Shown: one piece after another, positions 1 through 11,385 of the stretch | How the letters are laid out: the number at the start of each line of letters is the position of its first letter | Position numbering within the stretch: position 1 is the stretch's first letter | NCBI GenBank assembly: GCA_018985225.1 | Contig: JADGIF010000302.1 | Coordinates: 1-11,385 of the forward strand | DNA: 11,385 nt | DNA from: Amoeboradix gromovi X-113 | Lineage: Eukaryota; Fungi; Sanchytriomycota | Direction of reading: 5' to 3' | The notes under the pieces: generated by a model | Database searches by the model: none | The model's input: the letters and a program-made list of their open reading frames with translations, nothing else | What the model was told of the DNA's origin: nothing | Made by a program: the position numbers and the translations under genes

Positions 1-398
1 AAGGAACGCTTGAAGTTCAAGTGTAAGCAGAGGAAAGACGATGGTCGAATGCAATGAATCATTTACTAGTCAGACATGTACAAGGTGTGGTACTCTAAAG
101 AAAACCAATTTGGAGAGTAACACTTTTATTAATTGTCATTTGAGGATAGATAGAGACCATATGGCTGCAAGGAACATATACATCAAGTATATGCATCCTT
201 ATTCAATCCCACCCCAGGGTAGTGAAAGCGTGAGCGATCACTGTAACGGAGATCTAGCAATGCTAGTTTCTCTGTGGAAATTCTCGATTTTCTCGGAAAT
301 CAAAAGTTTTAACGAGGTGGATGTAATGTAAGATAAATTATTTTTTAAGATTTAACTAAGTAACATAGAGAAACAGAAACTAGTTTAAGTGGGAGACA
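1..398 (+). mobile_element. 3' remnant of a TnpB/Fanzor2-like (IS605/IS607 OrfB-type) element, family A copy 1, pseudogenised
   Basis: Frame 1 gives KERLKFKCKQR. After a frameshift near 30-37 it reads KTMVECNESFTSQTCTRCG...NCHLRIDRDHMAARNIYIK, i.e. the RuvC-II ExxTSxxCxxCG and RuvC-III DRDxxAARNI motifs of TnpB/Fanzor2. The second CxxC is partly deleted. Similarity to copy 2 ends at tttaagtgggagaca (384-398). Confidence 0.88.
200..398 (+). ncRNA. Putative omega-RNA scaffold region of family A element
   Basis: Sequence downstream of the RuvC-III motif stays alignable with copy 2. Stem gtttctctgtg (266-276)/catagagaaac (364-374), and possible pairing tcccac (207-212)/gtggga (389-394). Position matches TnpB/Fanzor omega-RNAs. 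Boundaries are approximate and expression is unknown. Confidence 0.45.
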
Positions 399-2312: not shown

Positions 2313-2708
2313 ATGGAGGTAATAGAATTTCCAACCGTCTCAAATTCAATTGCAATTGTGAAATACAATGGCTGCATTTGTGCATTAGAGGACACAAGAT
2401 ATTTCATGGTAAGCAACATCAAACTATCGGATTTGAGAGTTCTTCGACAATTCTTTAAGATTGGGGCTTTTACGATAAGTGGCGAATACAAACTATATGA
2501 GCTGATAAATTGCATCTACATATGCTCGAAGGATGCAGGAATAATAAAAGATGACCAGATTACTAGTTTTTGTAATGGAAACTCTACAATCACCAAATAC
2601 AACGATGAATGGTTTGTTGAGAGTCAGGAAGATCTAGACGTCTTCAAATTCAACATATTTATAGAAAAATACAAAGAAATGCACTTGAAAGTATTAAAAT
2701 CCCGATGA
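2313..2708 (+). CDS. Hypothetical protein (131 aa)
   Basis: ATG-initiated ORF with protein-like composition, packed 25 nt from the next ORF. No motif recognised. Confidence 0.6.
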   Translation: MEVIEFPTVSNSIAIVKYNGCICALEDTRYFMVSNIKLSDLRVLRQFFKIGAFTISGEYKLYELINCIYICSKDAGIIKDDQITSFCNGNSTITKYNDEWFVESQEDLDVFKFNIFIEKYKEMHLKVLKSR

Positions 2709-2733
2709 CAATTCAATAAATATTTTTAGAAAC

Positions 2734-3327
2734 ATGACTTCAATTAAACAGCTTATTTTACAACTCTTGGCTGATCAATTTATTTCATTATCTGATTTCA
2801 AACTAGTACAATCAAACTATGATAATCCTAAAATACGAACACGATATCCTCTAATTTTCAAACTACAGCAGTTGCGCCTAATCGAATGGGCTCTCAAATT
2901 GCAAATTCACAAGAAGACAGTTAAAACCGAGCTAATTAGCTCCCATGATTATTCCGCTCCATCTCTTGGCAGAAATTGCTTGAGTTTGTTGCATGACAGG
3001 ATAATAGAATTGGATAAGGAAAAAGCGCCCGATGTTGTTTTAATGCAGGTTAAGTACGAAAAAGCGTCTTATGTGCGTAACTCGGATATTCCGCCGGTAA
3101 TATCTGAAATTAACGAGCAAAGAAACTCTTATTTCAAATCCTTTAACGACAAAAATAGGAAATCTGACGTTCACGTAAATTTAGAAATGTCTAAACTGTA
3201 TGAGGATGCCAGATCTGAATTGGAGTCTCTTAAATCTGAGCAGATTGAGTTGAGAAAAGAGATACTTACGCTGTTACCAGAGAAACTGCAAAATCTGTTA
3301 CCAAATCCTTGGATTATCACTCATTAA
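2734..3327 (+). CDS. Hypothetical helical protein (197 aa)
   Basis: 594-nt ORF in AT-rich DNA with a short coiled-coil-like C-terminus. No family recognised. Confidence 0.7.
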   Translation: MTSIKQLILQLLADQFISLSDFKLVQSNYDNPKIRTRYPLIFKLQQLRLIEWALKLQIHKKTVKTELISSHDYSAPSLGRNCLSLLHDRIIELDKEKAPDVVLMQVKYEKASYVRNSDIPPVISEINEQRNSYFKSFNDKNRKSDVHVNLEMSKLYEDARSELESLKSEQIELRKEILTLLPEKLQNLLPNPWIITH

Positions 3328-3393
3328 ATGTCCTCGCATATAACGCAAGTGTTCAATTACTGCTGCAAACTTTAAAGTAAACTATGCAGGATA

Positions 3394-4026
3394 TGTCTTC
3401 CCATTTAAATCTTCTCACTTCCTAGAAAGTAAGAAAGCCATTCGCTCTATTACACTGGTTTCTCAGACTTCCTACTCTGTAGCGGGTGTGAGTAGCGATA
3501 CATATACTTCAAATACATGGTCTCTATCCACTTTAAAATGTTAGTATCATCTGTCCAAATGGGCTTTAGCCAGATGCAATACTGTGTGCACGCTTCACTA
3601 GTAAATGACTAATCACATTCAACTTGTCTTTCCTCTTGCTTTACGCTAGGGCTTCACCTTAAGGCCGTTTCGAAATGTAGCAGCATGTTCTATTTCTACC
3701 AACGATCTTTATAGATTTCACAAACTCTGCTTGCGATGAGTTGGAGTCATTGTTATAGATAACAACTATCCTGCTTTTTATCAAGTAGGCTACCCTGGTA
3801 AGATGGAATTCTGGGACAATAAAACTCATGAATTTACGATAAATGATTTATTCAATTAAAATCGATTAGCAATATTAAGCTGCTTGTTTATATTAAATGC
3901 AAAGTATCTTGACGGTCAAGAACCTCGACCTCCTTGAGTAGCTACCGCCTTAATGTACTTTACGTGGATAAAAATGAGGTGACTAGAAGATTGTATTGAT
4001 GTCCACGTTGTTACACCGGAATCTAA
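3394..4026 (-). mobile_element. Heavily decayed TnpB/Fanzor2-like element, family A copy 2
   Basis: The reverse complement of about 3394-3645 aligns with 26-398 (aagcaagaggaaagac; tcatttactagt; gatagagaccat; aagtatatg; tttaaatgggaagaca). Upstream relics are FIVPEF (3806-3823) and LDSGVTTWT (4000-4026), the latter resembling RuvC-I LDPGVRTF. The extension beyond about 3650 is less certain. Confidence 0.75.
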
Positions 4027-5255: not shown

Positions 5256-6126
5256 ATGTTTTCCGTTGCTACTAACCGATTTAAAGTATATCTCAGATAC
5301 TCAATAATTAGTATGAATAAATCTAGCGCAATTCCCTTCAAGAGATACTCCAGTAATACTGAAGTACATCCTGCTAAGAAGGTTGTTGATGATGACTACT
5401 TGTTAATGCACCCTGTCTACACAAATGAATATGTGGATTCCGTTAAACCAAAGCATCTCCCTCCTATAAAATGGCACCAGAAGGTTGGGTTCTATGCAAT
5501 TGGGTCAGTTAGATTCTTGTTTGACAAAGCCACGGGCTATCCCCATAGCATGTCAGAAGCAAAATGGTTGCAAAGAATGATATTCTTAGAGACAGTCGCC
5601 GGATGCCCAGGTACTGAGTTCTAATATAGGCATGGTTGCTGGAAGTTTGAGACATCTACGTAGTTTAAGATCTTTGGAGCGTGACAACGCTTGGATTCAT
5701 ACTTTGTTGGAAGAAGCTGAAAACGAAAGAATGCATTTGCTAACGTTCTTGAAATTAAAAAAACCGAGTGGAGCTTTTCGCGTTGCGGTAATCTTGACTC
5801 AAGGAATCTTTTACAATGTTTATTTCTTGGCATATTTGTTATCGCCAAAGGTTTGTCATGCTATGGTAGGGTATTTGGAGGAAGAAGCTGTCAAGACGTA
5901 CACTCATGCTCTAAAAGACATTGACGATGGGAAATTATGGAAAGATGTTGCGGCACCTGATATTGCGCAGCAATACTGGAGATTAAGTGAGAAGGCAACC
6001 ATGAAAGATGTTATACTTGCTATTCGAGCGGATGAAGCAAATCACAGTCATGTTAATCATACTTTCTCATTGATGAAAGCAAATGACAAGAACCCCTTTA
6101 GCAAAAACAGCCACAATGTACCTTAA
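5256..6126 (+). CDS. AOX: Mitochondrial alternative oxidase, two exons (5256-5610, 5630-6126)
   Basis: FLETVAGCPGMVAGSLRHLRSLR (restored by splicing), LLEEAENERMHL, GYLEEEAVKTYT and IRADEANH di-iron motifs. The basic/Ser-rich N-terminus resembles a mitochondrial presequence. Confidence 0.96.
5611..5629 (+). other. 19-nt spliceosomal intron in AOX
   Basis: GTACTGAGTTCTAATATAG has GT...AG ends and a CTAAT branch-like motif. Removal joins CCA G|GC ATG and restores the conserved PGMV. Confidence 0.9.
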
Positions 6127-6726
6127 TAAATATATTAATACTGAACCTTAGAACTTTGGCTACACGACAGCTTTGGGATTACAAAGCGAATATGATGTAA
6201 TACAACTGTCGACTTAAGTCTAATAAGCCATTTATCTTGATTAAATGAGGTATTTCGCACGAATCTATTTTTCTAGACTTTTCCAACTCCATGAAAACTC
6301 GATAATCTTTTGAATTCGGTTGGCAAGTGGGTCAAAATTACCAAAACTAGAGCATGAGAAATTTAAAGAAATCAATGATAGATAAGATGACATTCCTAGA
6401 GAATTAGGGACTGCTCCAAGAAAGGAAATATACGATACATTTGCAGCGATTGTTCACTTCAGATTACAAACAACAATTTATTTCATAATAGTACTGCATA
6501 GCAGGATGCTGCAGGAATCGATTTTAGTCCAATATATCATTTTTCATGATATACGAATTCTATTTTTCCTATAGAACGTATCTGTATAATTATGTAATTT
6601 TTTAATAACTCGTCATACCTTTCTTGTTATCAATTGCAAATATGTCCAAATTGTCTCATCTTCATTATGTCAAACCCTAGAAAGATCGTTAGGAGAAATT
6701 AACAATATTTAGATAATTGAAACATA

Positions 6727-6752
6727 TGGGACATCAAATATAAAAATTAGAC
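6727..6752 (+). repeat. Left terminal inverted repeat, family B
   Basis: tgggacatcaaatataaaaattagac; 23/26 to the reverse complement of 7099-7124 and 24/26 to 11142-11167. Confidence 0.88.
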
Positions 6753-7098
6753 TTACTTTCTGAAATAGTTTGAATCATTATTTCAAGTGTGTTAAAAGAT
6801 AGTAAATTAAATTAATCTTTTCAAGTAAATTATTTTAGTATAAAAGCTTTTGATCCATCAGAATCTTGGATACAATGGTTAACAAGAAGAAGAGAAAACA
6901 AAAAACAAGTTATACGAAGAAAAAGAAAAAAGAACAGATAAGGCACTCAAAGACCTTATTTGAAAGAGATAGTGGGTGATCTTGTTTTATTTTAAAGAGA
7001 GGAATGACATTAATGAAACAAAATTGGTTTGAAAGAGGAAGGACTTTTATTAATAATGGTATTCTTCCTTATGGGGCACCTCTTTTAAAAACGACTTG

Positions 7099-7124
7099 GT
7101 CTAGTTTTTGTATTTGGTGTCCCA
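7099..7124 (-). repeat. Right terminal inverted repeat, family B copy 1
   Basis: gtctagtttttgtatttggtgtccca; its reverse complement is 25/26 identical to 11142-11167. Confidence 0.88.
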
Positions 7125-7471
7125 TAGTAAACTGGTTTATACTTAATTTAAGATATCAATTATTTCATCGGTTTTCAGCATTTAGTTCAGGTAATTGATG
7201 TGTCATTAGCGTTCTCAATCATTGAATACACTGATTTTTCTCTTTAAACTTGGCACGAAATAATCCAATGACGACTCGCAAACTATTCTGACTGCAAATG
7301 AACACTCAAGTCTTCCATAAATAAGAATTTTTGTCGCTAGGATAGCGTTTTATACCGCGCTGAAGTAAGTGATCACGGTTTAATGGGCAAGTATTAATTA
7401 AAAAAAATAACGGCAAGCTCAATTTTATTGGTCAGCTTTATTATAAGATGTAGGAACACCTCTAAACCACA

Positions 7472-8252: not shown

Positions 8253-8591
8253 ATCAAGCTGGCACTTGTTACAATAGTCTTCAACGTATCCCGGTTGGAT
8301 GCAAAACAATACTTTTTCTAGTGAAAGTTTGATTTTGAAAATGCGATCATGAAATATACTAAGCCTTTCTTTAGAAACTCTAGTGTCAAAAGGGATACAA
8401 CACTTTAAAAATTTCAGATATAAAGCACATAATCATAGATTTTTGGAAAACCCTATTAAGCAAGGTAAGAAAAATGAGTAATATCAATTTATTTCTTTTC
8501 ACGGCATAATTGCAAGCAAAGTCCAAACAAGCACAATGTGTTATTGAATGTTACTTGGTTTTGCCTATAAAGCGCTTTCAATTGCGCCCTC

Positions 8592-9520
8592 ACAGTGACA
8601 GGTTGGTAGTTTGGCTGGGGTGGCACATCTGTTAAAAGGTACGTAGGTGTCCTATGGGGAGCTCATTGAGAACAGAAATCTCAAGTAGAAGACAGGGGTA
8701 AAAGCTCCGTTGATTTTGGTGTTCAGAATGCACACAAACCATCAAAGTGTGGCCTAAGTATCCTTAATCTCCCTGGAGTCTAGGGCTTGAGGTGTCTGAA
8801 AAATTACTACAGTGGCAACTGCTTCTGGCATCCAAGCGTTCATAGTGACATCGCTTTTTGATCCTTCGATGTCGGCTCCTCCTATCATACCGAAGCAGAG
8901 TTCGGTAAGTGTCTGATTGTTCACCCCTAATAGGGAACGTGAGCTGGGTTTAGACGGTAGTGAGACAGGTTAGTTTTACCCTAATGATGGGTCGTCATCC
9001 GCACAGTAATTCAACCTAGTACTAGAGGAACCATTGGTTCGAGTCTCTGGTGTGTGCTCTTAGCTGGTAAGCTAGGGCAGCCCGGCTACGCTCGTAGGAT
9101 AACGGCTGAACGCCTCTAGGTCGGAACACACGCTGGAAGAGCACTCTTTTATTAAGCGGCGTAAGAGTCAAAGTAAGATGGCGGTTACGCAAACGAGATT
9201 GCTAAATCTTGTAGTTCGGGCTTCGTATTTAGTGGTGAACTGAACACAACCGTAAGCCATTTTGTGTCTTTAGAAGCGAGATGTAATCATAGATGTTGTC
9301 AACCGGATATGCCTATTATAGACGCAAAATCAAAAGATGAGAAATGTTGATGAAAAGTGAAAGTCGTCGTTTAGGAATAGAATTATGCTATTCCTACTCA
9401 GTACTGCATAAGAAATTATTGCGACAGTTAAATACAAGATATGCATTTACTCTCAAGTATAAGAGGATCGCATTCTTTCGAGATGTTGCTGAGATTTAAT
9501 CACTACTAGAATACGATCCA
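8592..9520 (+). pseudogene. Isolated 3' fragment of eukaryotic LSU (25S/28S) rRNA, domains V-VI, degenerate
   Basis: Matches conserved eukaryotic LSU strings agtttggctgggg.ggcacatctgttaaa, cttcgatgtcggctc, taatagggaacgtgagctgggtttagac, gtgagacaggttagttttacccta, ggctgaacgcctcta and the 3'-terminal tgctgagatt. No upstream LSU is visible and invariant motifs are mutated. The 3' boundary is approximate. Confidence 0.9.
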
Positions 9521-10731: not shown

Positions 10732-11141
10732 TCAGTGAGTATTTATTCTTGGCACCTTCGCACCAAATGGTTGACATTTATACCACTTACATCGCGTAGA
10801 CTGGAAGGACATACCACAATATGTGCAACTATCTTTAGCAAATATTGCTGATGACTCTACCTTTGTAAATAGTCGAACATAAAAATTAATGCACTGGCAC
10901 AACAATGGTAGAACCACCTTTTTTAATCGATTAGCATTGTCTACCACACCTTTCAACACAAGTGTTAACGCATGCTCATGACTGAAATCAGAATGAGAAG
11001 CCATTCCACCATATTTCATGAAATTCGATTCTGGTTATCTGCCACCGGCTAGTGTCAGCATATATATGCAAGTGATGCATATCAAACCACCCTGTTTGGA
11101 TTTTTTACTGTGTTGTCTATAAATGGCGAACAAGTTACATA
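10732..11141 (-). pseudogene. TRM1: Disrupted tRNA (guanine-26-N2,N2)-dimethyltransferase fragment
   Basis: YVTCSPFIDNTVK/SKQGGLICITCIYMLTLAGGR*PESNFMKYGG...HEHALTLVL...ANRLKKVVLPLL...FYVRLF matches Trm1 (DP)YGSxSPFLDxAV..GGLLxVTCTDxxxLAG..PExCFxxYG..HExALR..FYVRVF. There is a 1-nt frameshift at about 11101-11106 and a stop at 11035-11037. Confidence 0.88.
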
Positions 11142-11385
11142 TGGGACACCAAATATAAAAACTAGACTAACTCGTTTTTAAAGAAGGTACACCATACAGA
11201 GGAAATGCTATCATTAATAAAAGATCTTCTGTTATACCAAGACTCTTTCATTACTTTCAATCCCCTCTTCAAAATAAAACTAGAAGACCCTGCATCTCTT
11301 TCAAATACATGAGGTCTTTGAGCATCTAAGCAAAAGGTGCATTTTCTTAGACGGTAATCTTTTCTAGAGTCATTTTGTAATGTTA
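11142..11385 (-). mobile_element. Right end of family B TIR element (copy 2), extends beyond window
   Basis: TIR 11142-11167 is followed on the minus strand by TA. About 190 bp aligns with 6945-7126. It abuts the TRM1 relic directly. Confidence 0.85.
11162..11383 (-). CDS. C-terminal 73 aa of a putative Fanzor1-like nuclease (5' part outside window)
   Basis: Open frame TLQNDSRKDYRLRKCTFCLDAQRPHVFERDAGSSSFILKRGLKVMKESWYNRRSFINDSISSVWCTFFKNELV*. CxxC followed by hxxRD...IL mirrors the Fanzor C-terminal zinc knuckle plus RuvC-III. The family assignment is by motif analogy. Confidence 0.6.
   Translation of the reverse strand, partial: TLQNDSRKDYRLRKCTFCLDAQRPHVFERDAGSSSFILKRGLKVMKESWYNRRSFINDSISSVWCTFFKNELV

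Follow-up and report, generated by a model that had tools for sequence, protein, structure and literature searches.

The window analysed here, 11,385 nucleotides that make up the whole of contig C550 in the 10.5-Mb, 1319-contig assembly of the sanchytrid fungus Amoeboradix gromovi X-113, ends inside a repeat. Close to that end the minus strand reads ...GGTGTCCCA, and the bases that follow directly are TAT GTA ACT TGT TCG CCA TTT ATA GAC, which translate as YVTCSPFID. The features around this junction, together with a related copy elsewhere in the window, are as follows.

11142..11385, minus strand: right end of a Fanzor1 "ghost" (MITE-like) element, which runs off the contig end, has at least 40 copies and is colinear with contig C1157
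11142..11177, minus strand: 36-nt terminal inverted repeat (TIR; TGGGACACCAAATATAAAAACTAGAC...) of the right type, a direct or inverted repeat with 6722-6757 and 7062-7137
11165..11383, minus strand: remnant of a nuclease C-terminus, 73 codons by translation (...RKCTFCLDAQRPHVFERDAGSSSFILKRG...), with its stop 22 nt inside the terminus
11140..11141, minus strand: TA dinucleotide beside the right end, site of a putative 2-bp duplication by comparison with the intact paralogue
11122..11139, minus strand: candidate guide flank (TGTAACTTGTTCGCC...), proposed by analogy with Spu-1
10756..11141, minus strand: TRM1 pseudogene fragment, residues about 150-278 of the intact paralogue, from Pfam TRM and tblastn
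6727..7124, plus strand: complete 398-bp ghost copy flanked by CATA and TA, with its left-type end at 6727 and its right-type end at 7124

Position 11142 is a real element boundary because some 40 other copies begin matching at the same place: on the plus strand the repeat terminus TGGGACACC starts at 11142, and at least 40 other genomic copies, 90-95% identical, start to match at 11141-11143. The initial annotation had set a TIR end directly against the TRM1 codons that follow the D-P motif, and the minus-strand reading, the Pfam TRM match and the alignment to intact TRM1 all agree with it. It had also seen CATA ahead of the left repeat of the copy inside the window, which is found at 6723-6726 with the repeat starting at 6727. 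Rfam and tRNA scans gave no match at the 11142 element.

The repeat belongs to a large family. Genome-wide, 1693 ends match its 20-nt terminal pattern, which amounts to about 850 copies; 988 candidates were also counted. The ghost copies examined span 300-780 bp, and their right part encodes ...YTSKKCSVCEN...YRLRKCTFCLDAQRPHIFERDAGSSSFILKRG..., with two CxxC pairs and then ERD, which is the layout of the TnpB/Fanzor C-terminus. The remnant at 11165..11383, with an upstream CxxC, recurs in other copies. One ghost copy of 782 bp (contig C389, L009:1504-2285) is lengthened by an internal tandem array with a unit of about 13 nt (ATAATACTGATTC-like), and shorter forms of this array are present in other copies.

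Longer relatives were reached by a search of 1.8 billion representative sequences, and through them longer copies in the genome. On contig C1157 an ORF with IGIDPGV, a zinc finger and the ERD motif stays open for 436 aa up to the contig edge. It stops 28 nt short of the terminus ...GGATGTCCCA, which puts the end of the nuclease ORF at the right inverted repeat or within it. The right end at 11142 is colinear with the 3' end of this Fanzor-like ORF and its right TIR, which upholds the earlier assignment of the element to a Fanzor1-derived TIR family with 11142 as the right (ORF 3') end. Contig C33 carries a 1.66-kb internally deleted copy whose left 270 nt are the left part of the ghosts, including the TATAAAAGG box, and contigs C574 and C1001 carry deleted copies of another subfamily. 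No complete nuclease gene of the family was seen among the matches listed. An active protein may come from C1157, whose ORF runs on to the edge of the contig.

How firmly can this nuclease be placed? Pfam found no significant match in the ghost remnants, and on the longer relatives PF07282 stays below threshold (20.9-26.1 bits, cut-off 26.3). The longer family proteins have no match in the PDB by sequence or by profile, alignment with hhalign to the IS607-type TnpB of the same genome covers the RuvC-I motif only, and the AlphaFold model of P0010, a 616-aa full-length relative 38% identical to the C1157 ORF, is poor (pLDDT 41.6). For P0010, the ESM Atlas returned giant-virus "transposase" clusters with PF07282 (feature score 0.98, TM 0.70 over about 500 residues) and bacterial IS605 OrfB/TnpB clusters (TM 0.42-0.44); this fold evidence comes from one source and concerns the relative P0010, not the TRM1 locus. 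The family is accepted as a divergent Fanzor1-type, Spu-1-like element with this caveat, the formal sequence tests being sub-threshold or negative.

Two candidates were set aside along the way. The Fanzor fragment at window 1-317 is not the parent of the repeat: at least 20 copies of its family share an end at about 317, and the TGGGACA repeat is missing from the family. That fragment, on the plus strand, is the C-terminal part of a different TnpB/Fanzor family (PF07282, E 2e-10) with a further piece near 3500-3623 on the minus strand, and its PF07282 domain has at least 150 scored matches in the genome (560 candidates). A pair of family TIRs 1.76 kb apart on contig C154 (L034:76-1834) encloses an unrelated 383-aa ORF, and its flanks TA and TT mismatch; host DNA may have been captured here, or the pair may be two solo ends. 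The genome also holds an IS607-like locus (contig C542:57-3245, L029) in which a serine-recombinase ORF stands beside an uninterrupted 569-aa TnpB/Fanzor2-like ORF on the same strand, with a 303-aa ORF downstream of the pair.

The closest known system is Spu-1 of Spizellomyces punctatus. There SpuFz1 lies between 30-nt inverted repeats with a conserved CA upstream of the left one, 134 ghost Spu-1 loci are without the ORF, and the omega-RNA joins a 75-nt scaffold over the right repeat to a guide of 14-15 nt of flank, with CATA as the TAM (Saito et al. 2023, PMC10432273). Ghost omega-RNAs function with SpuFz1. In earlier work on the same element, SPu-1, the TIRs are given as 33 bp and TA duplications as putative (Bao and Jurka 2013, PMC3627910). 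The A. gromovi family resembles it in having a single Fanzor1-type ORF between inverted repeats of about 30-36 nt with no transposase inside, an ORF end that adjoins the right repeat, many ORF-less ghosts that retain both ends, a CA that is conserved ahead of the left repeat and lies in register with the CATA TAM, and a hairpin predicted here over the right repeat. It differs in its roughly 850 ghosts against 134 in S. punctatus, in having a variable, A/T-rich pair of bases, not TA, between CA and the repeat, and in the 2-nt flanks of a single copy, which mostly disagree. Unlike those of Spu-1, the ghosts here are internal-deletion copies with about 80-100 C-terminal codons, and the protein is too divergent for sequence matches in Pfam or the PDB. 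The omega-RNA, TAM and cleavage activity of the A. gromovi family are putative.

In the predicted right-end hairpin, a subterminal UGGxGCACC base-pairs with the terminal GGUGUCCCA around an inner AAAAAC/GUUUUU stem. Nine copies from several subfamilies retain the hairpin, with one compensatory pair; the single-sequence fold is no better than those of shuffles (z -1.35).

The gene entered by the element is a copy of TRM1. Pfam TRM scores 72.3 bits on window 10765-11097 and 52.3 bits on the ORF at 10732-11019, and in the whole genome the profile matches three places: the intact gene on contig C606, the window fragment (profile 144-246) and a fragment on contig C49 (profile 11-101; 60 bits). The intact gene encodes 493 aa (L017:1255-2736, minus strand) and reads GAC CCA TAT GGA ACA TGT TCA CCA at the insertion site, that is, D-P-Y-G-T-C-S-P. 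By tblastn the window fragment is 74% identical to it in amino acids over residues about 150-278, with nothing past residue 278; its frame shifts by 1 nt within 11091-11106, and at 11035-11037 a TAA takes the place of a Gln codon of the intact gene. The part on C49 covers residues 8-149 with two stops and a frameshift (tblastn). In total the interrupted copy has three stops, frameshifts and no residues 279-493, and its motif is N-P-[insert]-Y-V instead of D-P-Y-G. Mini-introns are ruled out as the cause of the frame breaks by the intact paralogue, which is colinear and uninterrupted at both places. The initial annotation had named the interrupted gene simply as TRM1. That it is the TRM1 of the organism is not supported: by sequence it is a redundant paralogue, now a truncated pseudogene split over C49 and C550, and the working TRM1 is on C606.

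The copy did not decay from the start. Over 265 codons it differs from the intact gene with dN/dS 0.098 and dS 1.48, which marks the duplication as old and shows that selection maintained the copy through the greater part of its existence. It died comparatively recently, with the insertion perhaps as the cause or perhaps as a later event, and the element may have killed a working TRM1 paralogue rather than hit a dead one. The D-P-Y-G site of intact TRM1, CATATGGAACAT, itself resembles the left junction of the element, CA-NN-TGGGACAT, at 11 of 12 positions, which may be chance or may reflect an insertion preference for end-like sequence.

The other side of the insertion was located through the same Pfam TRM profile search. 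Contig C49 is 1.8 kb long, and its minus strand ends ...GAG ATC ATT GAC ATC AAT CCA TC, followed by TGGGACACCAAACATAAAAACTAGACCAAGTCGTTTTTAAAAGAGGTA and the contig stop. At this junction (...AAT CCA TC|TGGGACACC) the 5' half of TRM1 stands directly against a repeat end, and in the numbering of the intact protein one half stops at residue 149 and the other resumes at 150. It had been predicted that TRM1 5' coding sequence ending GAY CCA TA would precede the repeat: the 5' half does abut a repeat end, and it reads AAT CCA TC instead. In the same way, the expectation of CATA at the empty site finds its counterpart in the intact paralogue, which reads CCATAT, but the upstream flank observed ends CCATC and gives the tetramer CATC.

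Nor is the partner end the left TIR that had been expected. Past the 36-nt repeat the C49 end continues as a right-type end, of the subfamily found at the right end of the window copy at 7124, with which it is identical in subfamily, and the end at 11142 is of the main subfamily, unlike that on C49. All complete copies examined have one left-type and one right-type end. Since both ends facing TRM1 are right-type and of different subfamilies, the insert is probably a compound of at least two copies, nested or side by side, and not one element with a left end. A search for abutting RE-NN-LE junctions across the assembly found none.

The join of C49 to C550, and with it the inner structure of the insert, is read from complementary junctions only. 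Might the halves of TRM1 derive from separate loci, or have been brought together by an assembly artefact at the repeat? Both contigs end within the repeat, in right-type ends of different subfamilies, as would be seen if they were not neighbours. However, the halves meet at one codon, they are similarly diverged from intact TRM1 (75% and 77.5% nucleotide identity), and they are the sole TRM fragments that the Pfam search found in the genome, which makes unrelated halves highly improbable.

With the two contigs joined, the intact paralogue (CCA-TA-TGG) can be set against the filled site (CCA-TC[insert]TA-TGT), and the filled site holds exactly 2 extra nt. This fits a 2-bp gain with one copy changed since, or a dinucleotide carried in by the element. 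Further empty-site comparisons were sought from nested copies, none of which spanned the insertion point.

Flanks across the family extend the picture. The statistics derive from pattern searches; among the matches listed were 100 left ends, 94 of which have CA at -4,-3, mostly as ACA, followed by two variable, A/T-rich bases. CATA had been predicted as the TAM; it stands at only about 1 in 6 left ends, and the family-wide motif is ACA-NN. At right-type ends the figures are about 36-37% for CA and about 80% for A at -3. The two bases beside the repeat are variable, which does not fit duplication of TA, and of 26 complete copies 8 have matching dinucleotides on the two sides. This agreement is above chance and far below what regular duplication would leave; assembly mis-joins across repeats are one mundane possibility for the disagreement.

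MITEs derived from Tc1/mariner are short TIR elements with TA duplication, a 2-bp gain and a CA..TG-like target preference, and the A. gromovi copies are likewise short TIR elements with a 2-bp gain and a CA..TG-like target. A MITE of this kind could have been moved by a DDE transposase into CA-NN-TG sites with the Fanzor-like remnant as inert cargo and no RNA-guided role. The exact 2-nt gain at TRM1 is consistent with such an origin, as are the partly palindromic flanks (an A-NN|NN-T preference) and a remnant that has no significant Pfam match. Against it, the dinucleotide is not fixed as TA, 2-nt flanks agree in just 8 of the 26 copies, and no transposase lies inside any copy examined, nor was a DDE transposase seen with these TIRs. 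Left and right ends also differ strongly in C at -4, 94% against about 36%, an asymmetry not expected of a symmetric DDE target. A MITE with inert cargo is thus an unlikely account, and a Spu-1-like element is the reading carried forward here.

What could its right end do at TRM1? Bacterial TnpB elements of the IS200/IS605 type, with their non-autonomous derivatives, set the logic: the guide is the right-end flank, the TAM is the left-end flank, and the natural target is the empty site of the element itself. These elements are without TIRs and are moved as single strands by the Y1 TnpA, with no duplication. By analogy, the A. gromovi family would share the relation of flank, guide, TAM and empty site with the TnpB-omegaRNA system, and it differs from IS200/IS605 in its long TIRs and in the apparent 2-nt gain at the sole site with an empty-site comparison. 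If the logic of Spu-1 holds, the guide at the TRM1 locus would be the flank after TA, TGTAACTTGTTCGCC, and its target CATA plus that sequence. In intact TRM1, CATA is followed by TGGAACATGTTCACC, which mismatches the candidate guide at positions 3, 7 and 13 of 15 (3 of 20 counting TA). The 30-nt TRM1 flank, searched against the assembly with up to 3 mismatches, returned only its own match; as it occurs once, the assembly holds no empty allele.

Both results weigh on the proposal that the locus encodes a guide against any uninterrupted TRM1 allele or paralogue, which would be a self-targeting or homing-like situation. The assembly has no uninterrupted copy of the flank, and the one intact TRM1 differs at 3 of 15 guide positions. 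A guide equal to the flank would, moreover, hold for all of the roughly 850 copies; because this relation holds for every copy, the TRM1 locus is not singled out.

In its fullest form the homing proposal has a functional omega-RNA guide a Fanzor1 in trans against an uninterrupted allele of the TRM1 copy, for homing or copy-number maintenance of the kind proposed for TnpB, and perhaps also against intact TRM1. The architecture does match Spu-1, where ghost omega-RNAs work with SpuFz1; CATA directly precedes the matching stretch in intact TRM1; the right-end hairpin is kept across subfamilies with its one compensatory pair; and the C1157 ORF is open. Yet the three mismatches to intact TRM1 include positions 3 and 7 of the 15, the assembly is without an empty allele, a complete nuclease gene was not seen among the matches listed, and the fold z-score is just -1.35. 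Homing at this locus is therefore quite improbable.

The locus is probably best explained as the ordinary insertion of a Spu-1-like Fanzor1 ghost into a redundant, now dead TRM1 paralogue, and not as a self-targeting or homing device. On this account the sequence from 11142 on is the right end of a non-autonomous ghost of a Spu-1-like Fanzor1 TIR element, one of about 850 copies, and the insert lies at CCA|TA|TGG of the D-P-Y-G codons in the paralogue. The insert carries right-type ends of two subfamilies on its two sides and is probably made of two or more copies. By analogy with Spu-1, a transcript leaving the right end could take some 15 nt of the TRM1-pseudogene flank for its guide. Such a guide would be without a perfect target, given that no empty allele is present and that intact TRM1 has 3 mismatches in 15, and this lack of a perfect target argues for an ordinary transposon insertion.

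The TRM1 locus adds no new principle: the family enters coding sequence, and the relation of guide to flank gives no target in the working gene. Features of the family as a whole, namely the copy number, the asymmetric ACA-NN flank and the irregular dinucleotides, are more interesting. A more ambitious reading, which we hold to be doubtful, would make the 850 or so ghosts a working guide library, each omega-RNA directed against its own empty site and a Fanzor1 in trans (for example from the C1157 gene) cutting the empty alleles. If this were true, TAM-dependent retention or spread would have left its mark in the ACA-NN left flank, near-universal yet asymmetric, and the frequent dinucleotide disagreement would point to a transposition or repair mechanism new for Fanzor1 elements. 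TRM1 would then be a gene-internal example in which spread cost the fungus a functional TRM1 paralogue. Some 850 ghosts, a clear motif at the left flank and one or more gene disruptions that can be dated suit this genome well to asking whether ghost omega-RNAs are produced and put to use, a question that bears on the role of Fanzor in its natural host and on what moves Spu-1-like elements.

Two further features of the window lie apart from the insertion. An 867-nt stretch at 8514-9380 on the plus strand matches eukaryotic LSU rRNA (Rfam RF02543) at 437 bits over model positions 2389-3399, its 3' third; it is surrounded by protein-coding genes, where GC content is locally high, and may be an rDNA fragment or pseudogene. 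At 5611-5629, also on the plus strand, the alternative oxidase gene has a 19-nt GT...AG intron, and joining the exons restores ...AGCPG|MVAG....
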